Assembly (NCBI GenBank): GCA_002794465.1
Contig: MTSL01000141.1
Coordinates: forward strand, 1 to 10,197
DNA length: 10,197 nucleotides
Source: Paramicrosporidium saccamoebae KSL3
Taxonomy: Eukaryota > Fungi > Cryptomycota
Direction of reading: 5' to 3'
Shown here: piece by piece, positions 1-10,197 of the stretch
Layout of the letters: each line of letters begins with the position of its first letter
Numbering within the stretch: the first letter of the stretch is position 1
Notes under the pieces: model-generated
What the model saw: the letters and a program-made list of their open reading frames with translations, nothing else
The model's database searches: none
What the model was told of the DNA's origin: nothing
Made by a program: the position numbers and the translations under genes

Positions 1-80
1 CTCATACTCTCATACTCTCATACTCTCATACTCTCATACTCTCATACTCTCACACTCTCACACTCTCACACTCTCACACT
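1..80. repeat. 8-bp tandem array: 6x CTCATACT then 4x CTCACACT, probably continuing beyond the left edge
   Basis: Read directly: ten perfect 8-nt units, switching from T to C at unit position 5 from unit 7 onward. The array starts at base 1. Confidence 0.97.
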
Positions 81-159
81 CTCGCTCGCATTTCAACCTC
101 ACTCTGCTTAATTTGGCATGGCTTTCCGTTCGATTTAGGAATATTACGGCGTCAGTCTC

Positions 160-1305
160 ATGGAGACCATTGGGAGACAGGAATTGATGGGGAGACGTGA
201 ATGTTCTTTGACACTGACTGACCGCGAAAGTGATTACGAAACGGAACTGGCGGGAAATTGTGTGTTGAGTGCACGAAATTGCAAAATACTCATTAAACAA
301 GGTGGACACCGACTCTCCTCCAACGCCTTTGAGAGTTTGAACAGTTTCATTGTCAATTTCCTACAATGCATCGGACGAAAGATCACCACACGAGGGGACC
401 ACACTGAGCCGACGGTTCCATGGACACAGGTGATGGACGCAGCATCAATATTGGTGCCGTCGCTGGAGGGATGGTTTGGGACATGGCACACCTTATTAAC
501 ACAACACGCCACAATCCACCCCATTGCCGAGGTGCCTTGTTGTCGGGAAATTGCTGATAGATGCAGTTTGACCATCCCAGAAGAGTGCGAACGCATCCTC
601 CGTCTGTCAATGCATCCATTGGCAGTTTTGGATGGAGTGGCACTGAGCAGTATTGTTTGCACAATGAACGATGTGGTGCAGTGGGTGGTGCGAGTGGCAG
701 TGCGAGTAGTCGAGTCCAAGGGATTGGGCACCGTCAGGAAGGGAGAGATGGAGGCGGTTCTGACAAAGGCCCCCATTTTTGCAACTCTCCAAAATCCAGT
801 AGGATGCACCCGTGATCGGCCGGATTCAATTCTCTACGACTTTAACTTGCAGGAGATTGAGTCGACTGTTCCGTATAGTGTAAACGATCAGAAGGACTCC
901 AGTCAATCATCCCCCTTAATGAACTCGCCCGTCATGGCATTCCCTCTTTTGGAATCTCCCATATTGGATTCTCCCATGCTGGATCCCAGCAAGAGCCAAT
1001 CCATTTCAGTGCCAAAAATGTTGACACCAGCCGACTCGCCCATATCCTCGTCGCCTCTTTCAAAGTCCCTCTTGGCTGTCGGAGAACAGAGCCGAATAGT
1101 AGCATGCACGGATGCCTCCTGTTCCTGGATCAAAGTGACCCCCGCACTGACCGGGCACTTTATGGAATCGCGCGGCGTCGAAACTGACCTCATTGAGCCG
1201 ATCCGTCAGATTGAACAACCGCCGAATCAAATGGACCAAATGCAGAGGGAGATTGAGATTTTGAAAGAATTGATGGGTAAACTACTAAAAACATCCAACG
1301 ATTAA
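160..1305 (+). CDS. 381-aa protein with tandem histone folds (H2B-like then H2A-like), an S/T-P-rich linker and a C-terminal coiled coil
   Basis: Long ORF. aa ~41-100 (KILIKQGGHRLSSNAFESLNSF...TVPWTQVMDAASILVP) aligns by eye with the H2B core ([23 protein letters not shown]...TITSREIQTAVRLLLP). aa ~133-210 (RCSLTIP..ERILR...) aligns with the H2A core (RAGLQFP..HRLLR...). The start could be M1 or M10. No HMM search was run. Confidence 0.7.
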   Translation: METIGRQELMGRRECSLTLTDRESDYETELAGNCVLSARNCKILIKQGGHRLSSNAFESLNSFIVNFLQCIGRKITTRGDHTEPTVPWTQVMDAASILVPSLEGWFGTWHTLLTQHATIHPIAEVPCCREIADRCSLTIPEECERILRLSMHPLAVLDGVALSSIVCTMNDVVQWVVRVAVRVVESKGLGTVRKGEMEAVLTKAPIFATLQNPVGCTRDRPDSILYDFNLQEIESTVPYSVNDQKDSSQSSPLMNSPVMAFPLLESPILDSPMLDPSKSQSISVPKMLTPADSPISSSPLSKSLLAVGEQSRIVACTDASCSWIKVTPALTGHFMESRGVETDLIEPIRQIEQPPNQMDQMQREIEILKELMGKLLKTSND

Positions 1306-1545
1306 TAATACACTATATGTATATATTATGCAAAAGAGAACCGGTCTAGTATCATCAATCCCGCAGCCACCAGCCGCCAGCTCATTGCAGTCTCACTGGT
1401 ATGGTGGCGGTCAGATTAACCCCCACCTCAAAACACTGCCTCATAATTCATACTTTATCTACACTCTAATCCACCAAGCCATAATCTACATCTTAAAACT
1501 ACCTCATAACAATCAAATTTATGTATATCCTGCAATTATCGTCTA

Positions 1546-2643
1546 CTAGGCACTGCTACGCTCAATTAGCTCGGCCCGCAGCTGCGCAGTACGTTCCTCT
1601 GTCGACTTTGCATTGCCCTTTTTCATGATCCCCGCCCGCACCAACATGCCCTCGGCAGCCAAATCCCATTGGGGATAGATGCTAGAGAGATTTACAATGA
1701 TAAACCCAACGACAACACACACTCCGGCGGCAGTACGATAGGCATGGAACGTGCCCTCTTCCAGATATTCTACCAGGAGAGTTAGTGGGATATTAAAAGA
1801 GATCCCAATAGCCACTACCAGGGGAGAGGTGCACACAAAGGCAACATTCCAGAGATAATTGGGAATGAAGCCGCCAAGGAACACGTTGATAAGGATCAGC
1901 TTGACAGCGTCGTAGGATGGCCATTCCAGCACCTCTATTCCGCTTACATGCAGACCCAATAGCACGATCCATGCAAGTCCCAGGGTGTATAATCCTCCAA
2001 AGGCAAACAGCAGCGGCATGCTGATCCTCGATTCGTCAATGGATACTTTTTTGAGGAAAATGGAGTAGACTCCGTAGAGGACCGCCCCCACCAAGGCAAA
2101 ACTGTTCCCCAACGTCCGAGTATCCTCACTCGAGAATTCGGGGATTCCCAACAGAAGCACCCCGCCGACACTAATAAAAACGGCGAGGATGCGGAAAAGA
2201 GAAAGCACCTCGACCCCCATCATCCAACCAAAGAAAAGCGTAAAAAACCCACAGGTGGACGCCAAAATAGAGGCGCTGCCCACCGAAGTGGCACCAAAGG
2301 CAATGTTGGTGGCATAGTTGGAGGCCAGATACAGGGCGAAAAAGACGAACGCGATATTGGAAATCTCTCGCTTCGTAAACGGTGGCAATTCGCTTGGCTT
2401 GGCATCCGACTTTTCAAGACGCTTCACAGGGTCCTCTACCACCAAAAACACAAAGTACAACAGAAACGACAAATTCGTCAGATAGCACATCATGAACGGC
2501 TTGTCGTATTCTGCCAGGATTCGTCGGGTCAGGAACGATGAACCCACCCAAAACACCACCACAAGGATCAACGATGCTAACCCAATTAGGTACGTGGGAC
2601 ACGCTCGTGACCGCAGTGGGTTCTGCGATGCATTTTGGTCCAT
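1546..2643 (-). CDS. DMT/EamA-superfamily transporter, SLC35F5 / yeast THI74-YML018C-like, ~365 aa
   Basis: About 10 hydrophobic segments and family-like motifs: LVVVFWVGSSFL, YDKPF, TSVGSASILAST.GFFTL, GN..AL.GA..YGVY, YLW..A...TSPLV..IG.S..IPL. The start is placed at M32 (2643) of the 2736-based ORF; the upstream ATG is not excluded. Confidence 0.85.
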   Translation of the reverse strand: MDQNASQNPLRSRACPTYLIGLASLILVVVFWVGSSFLTRRILAEYDKPFMMCYLTNLSFLLYFVFLVVEDPVKRLEKSDAKPSELPPFTKREISNIAFVFFALYLASNYATNIAFGATSVGSASILASTCGFFTLFFGWMMGVEVLSLFRILAVFISVGGVLLLGIPEFSSEDTRTLGNSFALVGAVLYGVYSIFLKKVSIDESRISMPLLFAFGGLYTLGLAWIVLLGLHVSGIEVLEWPSYDAVKLILINVFLGGFIPNYLWNVAFVCTSPLVVAIGISFNIPLTLLVEYLEEGTFHAYRTAAGVCVVVGFIIVNLSSIYPQWDLAAEGMLVRAGIMKKGNAKSTEERTAQLRAELIERSSA

Positions 2644-2913
2644 CGCACTTCCAGAAACGGACGTCAACCCTTGTCGTCTGTCCGTTGGCGAGCCAATTAT
2701 ACTGCTTGTTCGTCCTAACCAATCGCATGTGTGCATGGACCGACCCTTATTCGACAGCTGTCGTTCGACAACAGCCGAATCGGATCAGATAGAATATAAT
2801 AGATTTTGCAATAGAGGCTCACCCTTGTGAGTTTTTGATCAGTAATACAGAAACACGCTACACTTTCAATAAATGGAATAAAGTACTCGATACTACAACA
2901 ATGGACTGATGAT

Positions 2914-3609
2914 TTATTGATACTGGTTGAGGGAGACTTGCGAAATGTTTGTAAATGCATCGAGCTCATGCTCGTGCAGATGCGGAAAGACTAACGATAG
3001 ACAAGAAACTGAAGACAGAGAGGGCACGGATGACAGTGCTGGCGATGATGGGGCATCGTATACTGGAGATGCACACTCGGGAATGATTTGCGCCTGAATT
3101 CCTACTAGTCCGGTCCGTGCAATCATTGTTGCCACAGATTCGGCATCTCCCTGAATTTTTAGCTGTGTGGAAGAGATGAATTGTGAATTTGCATCAATCG
3201 AATCCAGTCCCGCCAACAGCGACATCATTTTGTCACTCCACAAACCCGTCTCTCTCACATACCTTGCCACCACATCCCTGCCATTCCCGTTGGTATCAAT
3301 CTGTGGTGGAGTTAGGGTCAGGATAAAAGTCCGAGTTGGTCCGTTTCCTCGTGCAGGAATGTATCCAGCGAGCAATTGAAGCCGCTCCTGGAAAAACCGA
3401 CCCAATCCACTCACACCAAGACGACGTCCTGCAAATGGCAGTCTGGCTGGTCGTGGGTTCCAGCGTGTCCAGACTCGCGTCGGTGGTATGCGTCGTTGCC
3501 AGAGAATATATCGTAAGAAGGGAATGTGCTCTCCATATGACCCATTGTTCAACCGTTTACTTAGCCCGTTGGCCAGCTCCCGACACCAGCGCCGCATTCC
3601 CTCCAACAT
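2914..3609 (-). CDS. Hypothetical protein (231 aa as read through, possibly containing micro-introns)
   Basis: The only long ORF filling the gap between two genuine genes. An AT-rich tract lies just before the ATG and AATAAA overlaps the TAA stop. No recognisable domain, and the exon structure is uncertain. Confidence 0.45.
   Translation of the reverse strand: MLEGMRRWCRELANGLSKRLNNGSYGEHIPFLRYILWQRRIPPTRVWTRWNPRPARLPFAGRRLGVSGLGRFFQERLQLLAGYIPARGNGPTRTFILTLTPPQIDTNGNGRDVVARYVRETGLWSDKMMSLLAGLDSIDANSQFISSTQLKIQGDAESVATMIARTGLVGIQAQIIPECASPVYDAPSSPALSSVPSLSSVSCLSLVFPHLHEHELDAFTNISQVSLNQYQ
3388..3414 (-). other. Candidate 27-nt in-frame intron (GTGAGT...TTTTTCCAG) in the orphan ORF
   Basis: Strong donor, pyrimidine-rich acceptor, and a length similar to the two RTEL1 introns. 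There is no homology to confirm it. Confidence 0.45.
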
Positions 3610-3636
3610 AACCTTAATTTAAAAAATATTCTACAT

Positions 3637-6600
3637 TCAGACCCTTTTCAGCTGCGGGATCCGGGTGCGCAGTCGACATCTTGGACATTCCAGCTTTACT
3701 TGCAGCCAGGTGGTCCAGCAAGGGAAACAGCATACGTGTCCACATTTGGCACGATATCCGTTGTTGACAGTTTCTGTACAAATTGGACAGGCCTGGCTGA
3801 TTGTCGCCTGCGGGGCAGGAAGTGTCATGTCTGGAACGATATCGAGTGGCCGCTTTCCAATAGATGAGGTCGTCATAGTCCGAGTGGATCGGTTAGAGAC
3901 TAGTTGATCAAACAATTCAAGATGCTTGTTGGAAATAAAGTCTCTAAATCCCACTACCAAATCTTCCGCTTGGTTCTTCTCAAACAGTCCCAGGATCGTC
4001 AAGACCAGCTTTCGAATGTCAATCTGCTCTCCACGATATGCTTTCAAAATACTGTTAAACTCTCGAGTTGCATCTTTTCCAAGTCGACTCTTTAACACTT
4101 CTAGATATATTTGCGCCTGCCGATGTTTTTCAGTCTTTGCTGATGGCTGTATACTGGCCGGCTGTATGTTGGCTGGTGGTGCGTTGTTTGGGTTTACATT
4201 GCCGGATTTCACACTGAATGCTCTAACAAATGCATCGTTAACGGTAGGTGAATTATTCTCCAATTCAATCATTTTTGGAATGAGCAAGTTTTGTTTGGTC
4301 ACACGATTTGTATCAAAAAAGGAACGTGTCTCTTCCATAGTCTCTTTGGCAGCCTCAAAGTGTCTAAACAGAGAATTATCCATCTCCACTGGCTTATTAG
4401 CTTCATTTTCCAGTCGCTTTGACTCTTCACTGATTCGCTTGTGATCGAAAAAGTTGGTGAGATGGAGACGCATTTCTGCAAACGAGTCGTTGACCTTGAC
4501 ATGCGGACGAAGCCATTTCGATAGCTGTCCGATGGTACGCGGAGACGCAAAGCGATCGTCAAAAAGCAGAATAGCGCCATAGTCGTGTCGATGTCTGATC
4601 ACTCTGCCGATTGCTTGATTAACTGCTCGGGCTGCCTGTTGATTGTACCATTCATCGCCCGAGATGGAGCCCTCCTTGGAAAGGTCGTTGAGATATTGAC
4701 GCTTTAATTGAACGCGGGGATCCTTGAGGGGTGGATAGGGAATGCCGGTCACAATGACAGCTCGTCCCTTCCGATCGGCGAAATCTAGCCCCTCTGAGAC
4801 CTTTCCCCGACACACGGCAAAAAATATGGAGCCGTGGCCATTGCTAATGTGTCGATAATACGTGTCCATAACTCGACCCAAATCCCCCTTACTGCGTGGT
4901 TCAGTAACGGGATGTTTGAGCTGTGCAATCCGCTCGTATATCGACGACTGTCCCTCTGGGTCCTTTAGACGCCAAGCAGTTAAACACTGCTCCATCACAG
5001 CGTAAGAGGGAAAGAAGACAAGGACTCCATCCGGCACAATTTTACAAACCTCCCAGACCGACTGTCCCAACTCTGTCCGATACGAATCAGAGTTTCTCTG
5101 TTGAAAGGACGAGTTCAATGCCCCTCCATGAGGGCCTTTGGGAACCACGGAGCAAAAAATCTGCTCGTCACCAATGACATGGGAATTTTCCAGTTGGTGG
5201 GGGAAGGGAATCTGCAGCTCAGCTGCAAAAGAGGCAAGGGGTGATAGAGTGCCACTGGTCAAGAGGATTGAATAAATGCCCCGCTTCTGAAGTGCCCTCA
5301 AAGCAATTCCAGGATTAAAACACCAATAACTGATAGTTTTTCTGCTCCCTGTCAACCGACCCGGAGTTGATTCGATTGCCTCGGCAAACACTCGGAAATA
5401 TCGATGATCCGAATCGACAATGCTCCGTTCTTCCTCCTCGGCAGAGGAAATCTTGAAAATGGTACGCAGCGACCCTGCCATCAACTGCAATGAACTGCTA
5501 ATGTTGGCTTGTTTCTTAGTAAATTCGCTTTCTAAATATGCACGCGAGATGGCCTCAAGGTCGGCGAGGAGTTGCTTTACCTTTTCTTCAGTCACACTGG
5601 CACCACGTAGAAATTCAATTATAAACTCACCTCGTTGCAGCAACTGCCGATCTGCATTCAAGGGTAACCTTTCTAATTCAGCCCTAATCCGCATCAGCGT
5701 GGCATAACTACTCTCCAGCGCCATGGCATTTAGAGTGCCAACATATGTGCCGGTTTTGAGAAGATTTAGACAGCCCTCCACCTCCTTGACACATTGGGCA
5801 AGAATGTCGGTGGAAATGTCAGTGGAGCTGGCCTCACCACAAGTGCTCTCCACATTATGAGCCTCATCGAAAATGACTATGGCGTCGGTCAGATCCAAAG
5901 TAGAAATGGTTTGGGCCGTCTTCCGATCAACAAGATAATTATATGGCATCAGAACCAACTCGGCATCCAACAGGTCTCCCCGCGCCATGTAATAAGGACA
6001 CGCCCTACACATGAAATTGTACCTCTCCCCCTTACCGATGCATATTGCCCAATTTGACAATGTCCTCAATGTCGAGAAGATCTCCGCCCGCCCTCAGCAC
6101 CTCCAGTCGCTTTGTTGCATCATGCACCCGTCCATGCATTTCACACGCATTGCGTTTCACTAATTGACCACACACTGTCGTCATTGCTGAATTGGACTGC
6201 AGCTTTTTCACGGCGGGATTTGTGCAGAGCTGTTCCCTCGACCCCACCACAGCCAACTTTGGACGATACGCCGTTTTTCGTAGTTCAGAAATGACCTGTG
6301 TCAGCTGGGAATGAGTACGGCTGGCATAGATGATGAGCGGTGGACGTCGTCCTGGGCCGAGGGCATGCAAACGGGTAACCGGTGTCACGGGTAATGGCTG
6401 TTCTCCCACATATTGGTCATAGCCAGCCGACGATGCAGCCTGCAGTTGGGACTGTGCGGCCAGGACTGAGCGCCAAGCCAAAGTGGCACAAAGAAGACAC
6501 AATGTCTTGCCTGTGCCCGTGGGGCTCTCTAGCAAAGCATTCTTCCCCTACTGCTCAGCAGAGTGTGGATACGTACGTCTTTCAGAGCCTCAATAACAGT

Positions 6601-6678
6601 GGTCATGTAGGCTAGCTGCGGCTCATAGGCACTGTACGGGAAGGTGACTGACACTCCCGCTAGTTCATACGTTTTCAT
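3637..6678 (-). CDS. RTEL1: RTEL1-type XPD/Rad3-family FeS DNA helicase; exons 6678-6577, 6547-6036, 6004-3637; 993 aa
   Basis: The spliced N-terminus reads MKTYELAGVSVTFPYSAYEPQLAYM (Q motif)...GKNALLESPTGTGKTLCLLC (motif I). It also has YASRTHSQL, the FeS cysteines (QLC, VC, AC, CPYY), FDEAHN, LTSGTLSP, VCRGKVSEGLDF and RAVNQAIGRVIRHRHDYG. The C-terminus carries a harmonin-like helical domain (~4119-3900) and a RING (3789-3676). Exon lengths 102+512+2368 sum to 2982 nt, which is in frame. Confidence 0.92.
6005..6035 (-). other. 31-nt spliceosomal intron 2 of RTEL1 (GTAAGG...GTGTAG)
   Basis: Removing it joins DIEDIVKLGNMHR to ACPYY, restoring the conserved IEDLV.....CPYY segment. Retaining it gives an in-frame TAA. 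Confidence 0.9.
6548..6576 (-). other. 29-nt spliceosomal intron 1 of RTEL1 (GTACGT...CAGTAG)
   Basis: Removing it joins EALKD to GKNALLESPTGTGKT in frame. Retaining it gives a frameshift and a stop codon. Confidence 0.88.
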
Positions 6679-6762
6679 CAAAGAATAATGCATCTAATAA
6701 ATGCAGTCATGTCGTTTGTGCGGCTGGAGAGTAAGCAAAGGCGAAAAAATGTTTTGTAGATT

Positions 6763-6786
6763 CCTCATACCTCTCCTCATACCTCT
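6763..6786. repeat. Perfect 12-bp tandem duplication CCTCATACCTCT x2 in the divergent intergenic region upstream of RTEL1
   Basis: Read directly: units at 6763-6774 and 6775-6786. Confidence 0.9.
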
Positions 6787-7165
6787 CAACAGAGCAACGT
6801 CGTTAGAGAGCATGATTTCTGATCGGCCTAATAACCATTAGATCTAGTGCATCCTGAAGTCTCGATATAACTGACAGATTCGAGCAATTTATTGCCAAAG
6901 TTCAACATAAAGTCGATGACAGACAACCTGAGAGCGCACCTAAAAGTTGTTACTAATCAACCAGTTGCTCTTTGCAGTGAATATAAAAGACTTTACTCAC
7001 CACTGATCTATAACCCACATTGCATTCAACTTTTATATTTTACACCTCGACAAGTATCAAGACGCTCATTCACGCCACTGTGGCATGGACCTGTCATAAC
7101 TGCTCTGTTGAAGGCTCCCAACTGGCCAATCGTTGCTGATGCTCACCATGAGGTCCTCTCTGTTT

Positions 7166-7241
7166 CCGGGGTATTCGTTGCAATCATGAAACTGTCGCTC
7201 GTAGCGCTGTGTCTTTCCGTCTCTGTCAAAATCGTATCTGG
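7166..7241 (+). repeat. Copy 1 of a 76-bp 5'UTR plus signal-peptide segment (copy 2 at 9054-9129)
   Basis: 72 of 76 nt are identical to 9054-9129 by manual alignment, and the first 40 nt are identical. Confidence 0.95.
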
Positions 7242-8595
7242 TGTTTACTTTTACGGTGGCTACTGGAGTTTTAAACAAATTTGTCAAGCCAGGAAAGATG
7301 TCGCCAAGTTTCAGGCAATCTTAGAGGAGAAAACCCAGGGCGGCCTAGACAGCGAAAAACTTGAAAATTCATACAACATAATGAACGAGACACCGGAGAG
7401 ACGTATATGGCACTATGTCAAGTGCTACGGCACTCCTCAGCAAGCTGATGAGAGTTTGATAGCGGGTTTAGACTTGGTAAATTATGTTTACTGCATTGCG
7501 CTTGCCGATAATCCAGCTTTCCTTAGAACTCTGTCGAAAAAATTTCATAAGGCGATTATGAACCCAAACGGTCTGGTTGCCTTTGATGCTGTGAATCTTG
7601 CAAAGACGCTGCCCGACTTGAATGTATCTGAGGACGAGGATCTGCAAAAGTGCAGCGCCGAGCGGATCAATGAGCTGAAAAAACAGCGCGAGGATCTTAG
7701 CTTTGACCTAAAAAAGGCAATTCAGGCTGGGAATATTGAGGAGCTTGACCGTTACATTGCCAAAGAGCTCTGGGTACCATCTATCATCAATGTCAGAGCT
7801 GCGATCGAAGCTAATGAGCAAGAGGGTCTGCTGTACCTCCTGGAAAAAGTGAAATGGGTGCCTGGTGTTCGCCTCCTCAACAGTCTAACCAAGGCTAAGC
7901 GTGACGATGTCCTCGATTGCATACGCTCGTCTAATCCTGGCTGGAGGCCGAGTCAGAGAAATATTAACCGCGCCACCTTTTTTGGATACAAAGACGTTCT
8001 GGGCTTTTATGCCTCTGTTGATCCCGACATGCCTTCACCGAGCGAATCTGACTTGCAATCTGCACGCAAGTATTACTATTGGGACGTTGTTGAATTTTGC
8101 CTGAACAGATGGCCTCAGTCTTCTTTGAGTGTACTTGAAAAGAAAAAGTTTTATTCATATAAGATCTATGATGTTGCGAAGGGAGGGTATTTAGAAATTG
8201 TTAAATGGATTGCTAGCTCCTATCCCGACGGATGTCCACTAAACGGCGATTGTTTGGACATTTTATTTAAGAACAAACATTTCAAAGTCCTCGAATGGTT
8301 TACGAGCACTTACCCTGACAGAAAGAAGAAAATCCTGGAACGGGTCAATGTTGCAGCGGAAAAAGGAGATGTTGAGACGTTGAACTGGTATGGTAATCTA
8401 AACCCCGACTGGATCTTGAGTGCAGAGATCATTCGTGCTGCCATCAGTAAGGGACATTTATGTGTTGGTGAATGGGCCCTTAATAGGAAGGCTCCTAATA
8501 GTTGCGACGCGATGAAGTTTTTGATAACTATCAACAATGGGAACGCAATACGTTCATCAGATGAGGTAGAGGATGTTGCTGATAGAAAGAAATAA
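7186..8595 (+). CDS. Predicted secreted protein with degenerate 28-30-aa ankyrin-like repeats (paralog A, 469 aa)
   Basis: The ATG at 7186 opens a signal-peptide-like sequence, MKLSLVALCLSVSVKIVSG, and the paralog at 9074 uses the same start. Repeats include VAKGGYLEIVKW, AAEKGDVETLNW and AISKGHLCVGEW, with recurring W-x-P and YPD/NPD spaced 28-30 aa apart. Confidence 0.8.
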   Translation: MKLSLVALCLSVSVKIVSGVYFYGGYWSFKQICQARKDVAKFQAILEEKTQGGLDSEKLENSYNIMNETPERRIWHYVKCYGTPQQADESLIAGLDLVNYVYCIALADNPAFLRTLSKKFHKAIMNPNGLVAFDAVNLAKTLPDLNVSEDEDLQKCSAERINELKKQREDLSFDLKKAIQAGNIEELDRYIAKELWVPSIINVRAAIEANEQEGLLYLLEKVKWVPGVRLLNSLTKAKRDDVLDCIRSSNPGWRPSQRNINRATFFGYKDVLGFYASVDPDMPSPSESDLQSARKYYYWDVVEFCLNRWPQSSLSVLEKKKFYSYKIYDVAKGGYLEIVKWIASSYPDGCPLNGDCLDILFKNKHFKVLEWFTSTYPDRKKKILERVNVAAEKGDVETLNWYGNLNPDWILSAEIIRAAISKGHLCVGEWALNRKAPNSCDAMKFLITINNGNAIRSSDEVEDVADRKK

Positions 8596-9053
8596 ACAAC
8601 GGCAACTAGGGAATAGATCGGCTAGCAATGTTGTTATACAATCACTGCAGTCCGGATCTAAGGATCTCTAAGAGTCTCAGCAATCATGATCATTACAAGT
8701 GCCACCAGTCCAAAATAAATAGCGAGTCTTTAGGTATGCGCAGTTGCAATTGTCAAAACGTATGCACGTTCTTGCAGCACTCGACCATCCTATCTAACAA
8801 TTCCTCCTCTCTTACAAATGATATCTAATCAATCATCGCTGCTGGTTCTCAGTGAGGCATGGTAAGCCAACTCGCTACGTTTAAGGCCCAATAGCTCCCA
8901 TTGGAGGCTACGATCTGATGATGAGTCTTGCCCCATAAATGAAGACGATATTTAATGAAATGAGCTCTCGCTTGAAGTATCGCAATAAGGAGTTCCTGTA
9001 TGTAGGCTGTTGTATTACCACGGGGCACTTAGCATGGGGTTCTCTCTCTGCTG

Positions 9054-9129
9054 CCGGGGTATTCGTTGCAATCATGAAACTGTCGCTCGTAGCACTGTGC
9101 CTTTCCGTCTCTGTCAAAGTCATATCTGG
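9054..9129 (+). repeat. Copy 2 of the 76-bp 5'UTR plus signal-peptide segment
   Basis: 72 of 76 nt are identical to 7166-7241. Confidence 0.95.
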
Positions 9130-10197
9130 CTCTTCCTTAGATATTCGCAGTACTGAACAACCTAGGGAACTTATCGCCGAATTTCAGGCATCCTTGGAGG
9201 AAAGGTTCCAACTCGACTCCATCAACGGACGGCCTGAGAATGTACCTGACATGAGGGGCATATCGCATGAGTTGCGTGTATGGTTTTCTGCTAAATATGA
9301 TGGTACTTGTTGGCAAGCCGACTCGGACTTGGTCTGGGGTATAGACTTGTCAACTTTTCTCCCTTCCATTCTACTTGCTGACAACCCAATTTTCCTTGAA
9401 CGTTTATCGCCGCCCTTGGTCTCAGAAGTGATGAAACCATTAAATCTGATCAAGTATGACGCTGTGAACCTTGCAAAGACTTTGCCTGACCTGGCTGACT
9501 TTGCGGACACACTTCTACACCTGTTTCAGTCCGAGGGGATTATCAGGCTGAAATCTCAGCGTGATGAGGTAGATTTTGATTTAAAGTCAGCGATGAAGAA
9601 TGTCAGCATTGAGACTCTTGATAGTTACATCACCCAAGACCTGTGGAGACCAACGATGGATGATGTCTGTGATGCAGTCAAATCCAATGCGCAGCACTTG
9701 CAGCTCCTCTCGAAAGTGGCAAGTAGAATTCCCCATATGCTCTATCTCAACAGACTGAGTAAGGATGGCCGTGAAGATGTCCTTGGCTACATCCTTTCGC
9801 TGAATCTTGATTGGAAGCCGAGTTTGAAACACTTCCATGATGCCATTTTCGGCGGTTTTGAAGGCGCGTTAAAGTTTTATGCCTCTGTCGATCCCGACGT
9901 ATCTCCATCAAAAGAAGATTCGCTAAGATGCGCATATGTGTTCGAACATTGGGGCGTTCTTGCGTTTTGTCTGGAACGATGGCCCCAATATGTTTCAAGT
10001 GCATTTAAAAGACTAAGAACGCTGCGGCAAGGTGAGATTGATGTTGTTAGTAAACGGGGATTTGTAAAACTTGCTGAATGGGCTACCGCCGCCAATATCA
10101 AAAAAGAAGAAAAAGAAGCTGCTGAGAGGTTAGCCCTGAAGACGACTGCTCCAAAAGAGCATTTAAAAGTTCTCGTACAGCGTATTATCGTTAATCC
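9074..10197 (+). CDS. Paralog B of the secreted ankyrin-like protein, 3'-truncated by the window end (at least 374 aa)
   Basis: Manually translated with no stop before the edge: MKLSLVALCLSVSVKVISGSSLD... It shares LADNP, DAVNLAKTLPDL, FYASVDPD and FCLxRWPQ with paralog A. It is absent from the ORF track, presumably because it has no stop codon. Confidence 0.85.
   Translation, partial: MKLSLVALCLSVSVKVISGSSLDIRSTEQPRELIAEFQASLEERFQLDSINGRPENVPDMRGISHELRVWFSAKYDGTCWQADSDLVWGIDLSTFLPSILLADNPIFLERLSPPLVSEVMKPLNLIKYDAVNLAKTLPDLADFADTLLHLFQSEGIIRLKSQRDEVDFDLKSAMKNVSIETLDSYITQDLWRPTMDDVCDAVKSNAQHLQLLSKVASRIPHMLYLNRLSKDGREDVLGYILSLNLDWKPSLKHFHDAIFGGFEGALKFYASVDPDVSPSKEDSLRCAYVFEHWGVLAFCLERWPQYVSSAFKRLRTLRQGEIDVVSKRGFVKLAEWATAANIKKEEKEAAERLALKTTAPKEHLKVLVQRIIVN

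Follow-up and report, generated by a model that had tools for sequence, protein, structure and literature searches.

The gene and its predicted histone pseudodimer

We analysed a stretch of 10,197 nucleotides (the window) from Paramicrosporidium saccamoebae KSL3 (GenBank assembly GCA_002794465.1, contig MTSL01000141.1, positions 1 to 10,197 of the forward strand), focusing on a gene between 160 and 1305 whose product is predicted to carry two histone folds in one chain. P. saccamoebae is a rozellomycotan and an intranuclear parasite of amoebae according to its genome paper, in which histones are not mentioned. A preliminary description, made from the sequence alone, had reported a single-chain H2B-like/H2A-like doublet at 265-795 on the plus strand. 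This region shares its frame with the open reading frame (ORF) 160..1305 and corresponds to residues 36-212 of 381; the doublet is real, but it is only the N-terminal half of a modular protein whose C-terminal motif and zipper had been missed.

The gene is real and encodes a conserved protein: a stop codon lies in frame directly 5' of the ATG at 160, the alignment with homologues is collinear from start to stop, and the deposited gene model has identical coordinates. Minus-strand ORFs over the region (234..809 and others) were rejected as shadows of the conserved plus-strand frame. The features of the gene up to the end of the second fold are listed below, with their basis in brackets.

160..1305 (+): complete single-exon coding sequence, 381 amino acids (aa) plus stop, P0001 (ORF list, upstream stop, homologue alignment, deposited model)
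160..264 (+): acidic N-terminal segment, aa 1-35, net charge -4, with conserved DRESD[YF]E.E, standing where the basic histone tail would be (alignment, composition)
265..516 (+): histone fold 1, H2B-like (AlphaFold2 (AF2) helices, family profile, Smith-Waterman, hhalign)
271-297 (+): fold 1 alpha1, aa 38-46 (AF2)
298-318 (+): fold 1 loop L1, GHRLSS (AF2)
319-387 (+): fold 1 alpha2, aa 54-76 (AF2)
388-420 (+): fold 1 loop L2, of varying length within the family (AF2)
421-453 (+): fold 1 alpha3, aa 88-98 (AF2)
457-516 (+): fold 1 H2B-type alphaC, aa 100-119 (AF2)
517..576 (+): inter-fold linker, aa 120-139, structured (AF2, predicted local distance difference test (pLDDT) block 86-94)
538-546 (+): PCC of the linker motif H-x3/4-H...P-C-C (family alignment)
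544-561 (+): short linker helix at the H2A alphaN position, aa 129-134 (AF2)
577..795 (+): histone fold 2, at the H2A/NF-YC position (AF2, fold-2 profile, register statistics)
577-609 (+): fold 2 alpha1', aa 140-150 (AF2)
610-633 (+): fold 2 loop L1' (AF2)
634-717 (+): fold 2 alpha2', aa 159-186 (AF2)
718-738 (+): fold 2 loop L2', KGLGTVRK (AF2)
739-768 (+): fold 2 alpha3', aa 194-203 (AF2)
772-789 (+): fold 2 short alphaC', KAPIFATL, aa 205-210 (AF2)

Residues 36-212 are strongly predicted to form an intramolecular histone pseudodimer (a double histone fold). AF2, run on residues 30-218 with a 27-sequence alignment (domain-model numbering plus 29 gives ORF numbering), returned a pLDDT of 93.2 and a predicted template modelling score (pTM) of 0.89 for one chain, and in the model this chain pairs with itself, as had been proposed. 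The order of elements is alpha1-L1-alpha2-L2-alpha3-alphaC, followed by alphaN-alpha1-L1-alpha2-L2-alpha3-alphaC. Bridge residues are predicted between fold-1 L1 and fold-2 L2 and between fold-1 L2 and fold-2 L1; these two L1/L2 pairs are the hallmark of the histone handshake. An earlier AF2 model from four sequences (pLDDT 43; now superseded) already had the right helix pattern and gave the identical Foldseek ranking.

In PDB, Foldseek puts single-chain or fused H2B-H2A(.Z) structures at every rank from 1 to 20, with just two other entries in the top 33 (for the H2B-H2A(.Z) structures, template modelling (TM) score by query, TMq, 0.66-0.74; E from 1e-5; identity 11-17%; probability 1.00; about 180 columns), and the score by target (TMt) is 0.71-0.77 for stand-alone H2B-H2A chains. 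Further down come the H2B-H2A doublet of Melbournevirus (0.65), the histone domain of SOS (0.58-0.65) and the Methanopyrus doublet HMk (0.49). Against BFVD, giant-virus H2B/H2A fusions lead, ahead of H4-H3 doublets: the best match is a Clandestinovirus H2B/H2A protein (E=1.8e-6, TMq 0.75), followed by Marseillevirus and pithovirus-like fusions, with 8-17% identity to the viral doublets. The preliminary description had named AlphaFold and Foldseek as its check, and the lack of a handshake fold as what would speak against it; the handshake is present in the model, and single-chain H2B-H2A constructs and giant-virus fusions rank first. By prediction, the region thus belongs both to the histone-fold superfamily and to the double histone folds.

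Pfam was searched with the ORF, the region, all 27 family members (E<=10) and the C-terminal module. PF00125 (Histone) has no match in the ORF, the region or any of the 27 members. The Histone, CBFD_NFYB_HMF and CENP profiles, which had been put forward as a means of detecting the folds, likewise give no Pfam match in the 27 members, but the family's own profile does find H2B. Given 0 of 27 Pfam matches, the evidence for homology therefore consists of the family's own profile together with the structure. Searches of PDB sequences with the single sequence and with a four-sequence profile were empty, and among the PDB-sequence searches for the whole family only the 27-sequence profile gave matches: 165 at E<=10 against all PDB sequences, with H2B in all 60 of the 60 matches listed. 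The E-values are 0.02-0.13 for each of the listed H2B chains and 2.5e-5 for a tandem H2B construct, and the profile-H2B alignment spans L1-alpha2-L2-alpha3 (the rLSsnAFeaLnsF side against ...LLLP).

The two folds, their histone surfaces and the C-terminal half

Fold 1 is probably H2B-derived, with a predicted H2B-type alphaC: the family profile, in matches that are each marginal, and hhalign both point to H2B (hhalign P=7e-4 for H2B; P>0.15 for other classes). Fold 1 aligns with human H2B at a Smith-Waterman score of 42 (z=4.8), which none of 2000 shuffles equals, and the H2B correspondences pointed out earlier (LSSNA/ISSKA, LNSF/MNSF, TV/TI and AASILVP/AVRLLLP) all fall within this single local alignment. 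Two features of H2B are not found in fold 1: the basic N-terminal tail and the basic L2 DNA contacts (K85 aligns with E83, and R86 with a gap).

Nowhere is the family more conserved than in fold 2 (G188, T191 and P205 occur in 15 out of 15 sequences). It had been aligned without gaps to H2A residues 42-96; the register (ORF position = H2A position + 114) and the hydrophobic pattern were borne out, but the specificity for H2A was not. In this register, the hydrophobic pattern agrees with H2A at 38 of 55 positions (p=0.004), the identity is 3/55, and the BLOSUM score is marginal (z=1.9, p=0.03). H2B, HMfB, NF-YC, NC2alpha, SOS fold 2 and H4 each outscore H2A, so the register is that of a histone fold rather than of H2A in particular. 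By Smith-Waterman, the similarity of H2A to fold 2 is no better than that of shuffles (z=0.09); a profile of fold 2 only matched no H2A in PDB, its matches being the archaeal-type histone HmvA (8bdk; E=0.0023), TAF12 (0.61) and H2B (1.2); and hhalign against the reference sequences left fold 2 without a class. At the positions of H2A R77 and H82, fold 2 keeps the canonical L2 threonine and the acidic residue of alpha3 (GTVRKGE). The model has an alphaN-like helix (aa 129-134) and a short alphaC-like helix (aa 205-210), both predicted to be of H2A type, and the end of fold 2 does resemble NF-YC as had been noted: KAPIF..L is similar to the F[DQ]FL helix of NF-YC and NC2alpha. Fold 2 is therefore H2A-class by position and by its alphaN/alphaC helices only, and by sequence it is a generic histone fold.

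We asked whether one fold had been duplicated within the protein, and rejected this: hhalign gave no signal between fold 1 and fold 2 (P=0.078, 11% identity), and there is no sign of such an event, since fold 1 is nearer to H2B (P=7e-4) than to fold 2.

The linker between the folds carries the motif H-x3/4-H-x6-10-P-C-C (505-546, aa 116-129), which is conserved in most full-length members and missing in P0004, P0005, P0011, P0023, P0025 and P0031; it could be a candidate metal site.

The protein is not a nucleosomal histone, as judged from its residues: it lacks the basic tails, the acidic patch, the docking domain, R42/R77 and K85/R86, and the net charge of the doublet is about zero (+1, pI 7.8), as compared with +17 for human H2A and +18 for human H2B. 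The register check gave exactly the replacements first read from the sequence: the acidic-patch positions E56/E61/E64/D90/E91/E92 are N/W/R/A/P/I, and R42 and R77 are V and T. The N-terminus is, as described, not basic (aa 1-35, net -4). The H2A docking domain is absent, as the chain is disordered directly past alphaC' (pLDDT, composition), and fold-2 alpha1 is acidic in the Paramicrosporidium clade (PEECER).

The polar positions conserved in 15 full-length doublets are clustered at one end of the pseudodimer: R39, K42, G49, R51 and S53 in alpha1/L1 of fold 1, and R182, E185, K187, G188, T191, R193, K194, E196 and K203 at the alpha2 end, L2 and alpha3 of fold 2. We equate this end with the DNA-binding site that H2B L1 and H2A L2 form in the histone dimer, as established from nucleosome structure. 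The second L1-L2 site (the fold-1 L2 side) varies in length and sequence across the family. The conservation pattern thus points to one basic L1-L2 site that is kept, with the remaining histone surfaces degraded.

The C-terminal half contains three further features:

796..1089 (+): disordered S/P-rich linker, aa 213-310, 98 residues, 20% Ser, 13% Pro, net charge -6 (pLDDT <50, no secondary structure)
1090..1197 (+): C-terminal motif R[IY]VxC[TS]D..x[PS]W[IM][KQ]V...F[VM][EQ]S[RT]GV[EQ]TD, aa 311-346 (family alignment)
1228..1290 (+): C-terminal amphipathic helix, a leucine-zipper-type short coiled coil, aa 357-377, MQREIEILKELMGKLLK (predicted helix, profile)

Seven of the eight S/T-P sites of the protein are in the S/P-rich linker (the remaining one is at aa 327). 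Positions 910-1056 (aa 251-299) hold four SP[LVI][LM] repeats (SPLM, SPVM, SPIL and SPML), of which 949-977 forms a tandem repeat of 15 nt, and also TPADSP, a motif that the close relatives P0002, P0004 and P0005 have as well; the repeats and TPADSP are candidate sites of proline-directed phosphorylation. The C-terminal motif, which has the same C, D and W in each of 22 sequences, is probably beta-like (three short strands) and has no match among PDB sequences or Pfam families. Positions 41-69 of the C-terminal profile match coiled coils only (GCN4, NEMO-GCN4 chimeras, IF1 and the DC-SIGNR neck), and Pfam gives only weak coiled-coil matches for the C-terminal module (best HALZ, E=0.0016).

Family, likely role and rival explanations

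A word-indexed search of 5.8 billion proteins returned three relatives with 37-45% identity (P0002 is 45% identical to the window protein over 92% of its length). A HMMER scan of 1.84 billion cluster representatives, queried with the alignment of the first relatives, found 31 at E<=1e-3 (24 of them at E<=1e-10 and 12 at E<=1e-30). A second search with the 31-sequence alignment returned five members, all already known; no relative turned up when 2.9 million viral contigs were scanned, and scans of metagenome contigs found none beyond those above. With the sole exception of the window's own protein, family members come from run assemblies or metagenomes. The 10 clusters looked up are named 'hypothetical protein' at most, and the word-search homologues are likewise unnamed.

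The neighbours of the gene in the window encode an EamA-type transporter and an RTEL1-like helicase with a C-terminal RING, and a gene encoding a gamma-tubulin complex protein (GCP) lies just outside. A relative that is 41-47% identical, P0005/P0032, adjoins GCP, RTEL1 and EamA genes in the same way, and from this shared neighbourhood we regard it as the orthologue in a related organism. Other members are found on compact eukaryotic contigs. On contig L003 (Logan SRR28640822), from a related organism, the GCP, RTEL1-RING, EamA and doublet genes are kept together, with different orientations of the EamA and doublet genes and therefore local inversions. A second subfamily (P0006-P0010, P0012, P0013, P0015, P0018, P0021 and P0030) has the form TRYVxC[ST]D...QSTGVQTD, and its linker carries a helix-like EEMSVAELA[RK]LVNERL that is absent from the Paramicrosporidium clade. 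Four short members (P0022, P0026, P0027 and P0029) hold the C-terminal module alone and may be fragments or separate genes.

Cellular double histone folds have been surveyed in a 2026 review, which lists the HMk and halobacterial doublets, the SOS H domain, ABTB2/Cca3S, SPT3, bacterial doublets, and animal doublets that are at least 60% identical to histones. No fungal family except SPT3 appears there, in keeping with the earlier remark that no described family was recognised. Our protein shares with the H2A-H2B dimer (including the single-chain structures 4m6b, 6w4l and 4nft) the handshake, the order with H2B first, the H2B-type alphaC, the H2A-type alphaN/alphaC, TM scores of 0.70-0.77 and a fold 1 that is detectably H2B-related. 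It differs in its low identity (11-17%), in the replacement of most DNA-contact Arg/Lys residues, in having no tails, patch or docking domain, and in adding a long disordered region, the C-terminal motif and the zipper. The doublets of giant viruses (Marseilleviridae, Clandestinovirus, pithovirus-like) are also natural single-chain H2B-H2A fusions (TMq 0.61-0.75), and they are described as forming nucleosome-like particles with H4-H3 doublets. The Paramicrosporidium gene, however, is cellular, is syntenic in a relative, and has neither the viral basic character nor a viral sequence relative; membership among the giant-virus doublets was rejected on the cellular gene, the syntenic orthologue, the lack of a relative on viral contigs and a resemblance that is structural only.

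Among cellular proteins, the SOS H domain is the non-nucleosomal eukaryotic case with H2B-like then H2A-like order (TM 0.58-0.68); the review describes it as having low histone identity and as occurring in animals and Capsaspora. Its structural match is weaker than that of H2A-H2B, hhalign detects no sequence relation between it and our doublet (P=0.78), and SOS continues with DH-PH-REM-Cdc25, no such Pfam domain being found in the ORF; the absence of the guanine nucleotide exchange factor (GEF) domains of SOS had been stated correctly. ABTB2 (Cca3)/Cca3S is again H2B-like then H2A-like with low histone identity and a proposed non-nucleosomal role (2026 review), but it is animal-restricted, and ABTB2 adds ankyrin and BTB/POZ domains; it is set apart here by description, with no Pfam ankyrin or BTB match in our protein. 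NF-YB/NF-YC, NC2beta/alpha and POLE3/POLE4 are pairs of an H2B-class and an H2A-class fold, not strongly basic, which bind DNA without wrapping it; they consist of two separate chains, whereas ours is one. This class was rejected: PF00808 matches none of the 27 members, hhalign gives the class low probabilities, and fold 1 scores with H2B and not with NF-YB, NC2beta or POLE3. SPT3 (TAF13-like and TAF11-like folds) was rejected as well, with no Pfam TFIID-18kDa/SPT3 match and no SPT3 structure in the top 50 Foldseek matches. The architecture itself is thus known and recurrent, and the order of H2B before H2A here is apparently another independent case of this fusion. The family is undescribed, and we consider it new because the accompanying domains differ (for ABTB2, by description), there is no detectable sequence relation to SOS, and the eukaryotic lineage is different.

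The explanation that we favour, and consider probable, is that these proteins are a new non-nucleosomal double-histone-fold family, a lineage-restricted invention, with one conserved basic L1-L2 site and dimerisation through the zipper, whose function we infer as follows. The basic end (R39, K42, R51 and S53 of fold 1 with K187, G188, T191, R193, K194 and K203 of fold 2) would bind a polyanion, most likely DNA; the alternatives would be a phospholipid or a peptide that is acidic or phosphorylated (compare the SOS histone domain). Two chains, held together by the C-terminal leucine zipper, would bind bivalently, and the S/P-rich linker with the beta-like motif may serve in regulation (by proline-directed phosphorylation) or in partner binding. 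As to origin, the simplest course would be that an H2B and an H2A-class gene fused and then diverged in Paramicrosporidium-like Rozellomycota and uncultured relatives. What the analysis shows is the predicted fold and the pattern of conservation; the ligand, the dimerisation and the regulation are inferred.

Several points weigh against this explanation. The whole protein is acidic (net charge -12), no classical nuclear localisation signal is evident, and a protein or a lipid, rather than DNA, could be what the conserved basic patch binds. The structure is a prediction and not a solved one; the H2B profile matches are marginal one by one (E about 0.02); the Pfam histone-fold models match none of the 27 members even at E<=10; and the range of the family rests mostly on contigs without assigned taxonomy.

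A serious alternative, though one we doubt, is that the doublet is purely a protein-protein or membrane module like that of SOS or ABTB2 and never touches DNA; its basic end would then bind an acidic partner peptide, its own C-terminal motif (autoinhibition) or acidic phospholipids. The neutral doublet in an acidic protein, the loss of two of the three histone DNA-binding sites, and the conserved C-terminal motif would all suit such a module, as would the fact that the known eukaryotic non-histone doublets work via protein interactions (2026 review) and that SOS is a clear structural neighbour. However, what is retained is exactly a canonical L1-L2 site for phosphate binding, where four to seven basic residues are conserved, and our protein has neither sequence similarity to SOS nor Pfam GEF, ankyrin or BTB domains. 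It is improbable, in our judgement, that the parasites independently fused an H2B-H2A pair and stripped it into a dimeric, non-wrapping mimic that antagonises the chromatin of the parasite or of the amoeba host, in which case it would cap or compete with H2A-H2B at H3-H4 tetrasomes, histone chaperones or importins; if true, no earlier H2B-H2A doublet from cells other than those of animals would be known in such a role. Quite improbable is a plain H2A-H2B mimic or decoy, which would compete for chaperones or importins or cap H3-H4 tetrasomes, and which might target amoeba-host chromatin. The overall shape is indeed nearest to that of true H2A-H2B dimers and the organism is an intranuclear parasite; but there is no signal peptide or hydrophobic N-terminus (Kyte-Doolittle maximum 0.64 in the first 40 residues), the surfaces that would contact chaperones or H3-H4 are not conserved (the basic DNA face, the acidic patch, the docking domain and the H2B alpha2-alpha3 face), and the family and its synteny resemble those of an ordinary vertically inherited gene. 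Chaperone complexes are frequent among the matched PDB entries solely because these entries use single-chain H2B-H2A.

The doublet could also have been captured from a giant-virus H2B-H2A fusion, given the shared amoebal hosts, rather than have arisen by an independent cellular fusion. The viral doublets have the identical order and include the best BFVD match (Clandestinovirus H2B/H2A, then Marseillevirus and Pithovirus fusions), a likeness that is structural only, and the order is weak evidence for capture because it also arose in SOS and in animal doublets. The family profile finds cellular H2B, with viral doublets in none of the 60 PDB matches listed, the scan of 2.9 million viral contigs gave no relative, and the identity to viral doublets is 8-17%; we regard capture as very improbable. 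Finally, the similarity might be due to chance with no histone fold at all, as the 0 Pfam matches and the 3 residues of 55 identical to H2A could suggest. We rate this as barely credible: chance is excluded by the profile matches (H2B in all 60 listed, and HmvA for the fold-2 profile), the high-confidence AF2 model (pLDDT 93, pTM 0.89; Foldseek probability 1.00, TM about 0.74 over about 180 columns) and the conservation in homologues. The doublet as originally observed is confirmed.

The family adds to the known architectures a cellular H2B-then-H2A doublet from a deep fungal lineage, Rozellomycota, with a C-terminal module of its own, and is relevant to the evolution of histone folds. It is a natural case of what survives of histone surfaces after nucleosome formation is lost (here, one L1-L2 site is kept). 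It also calls for caution in surveys of histones: profile libraries miss the entire family, which is too divergent for Pfam.

Other features of the window

The RTEL1-like helicase gene is on the minus strand (~3637-6693) and encodes DEAD_2, ARCH_RTEL1, Helicase_C_2, HHD and a C-terminal C3HC4 RING. It is broken by a 31-nt GTAAG...TAG intron (~6004-6034), the removal of which joins ...KLGNMHR and ACPYY... in frame; the deposited annotation gives this gene as two models (6032-6678 and 2998-6012). On the plus strand, 6892-8595 is an uncharacterised ORF of 567 aa (476 aa in the deposited model) for which Pfam gives no significant match. The contig starts with an 8-nt microsatellite, CTCATACT (1-83; 10.4 copies), which drifts to CTCACACT and is found ~75 nt 5' of the ATG of the doublet gene.

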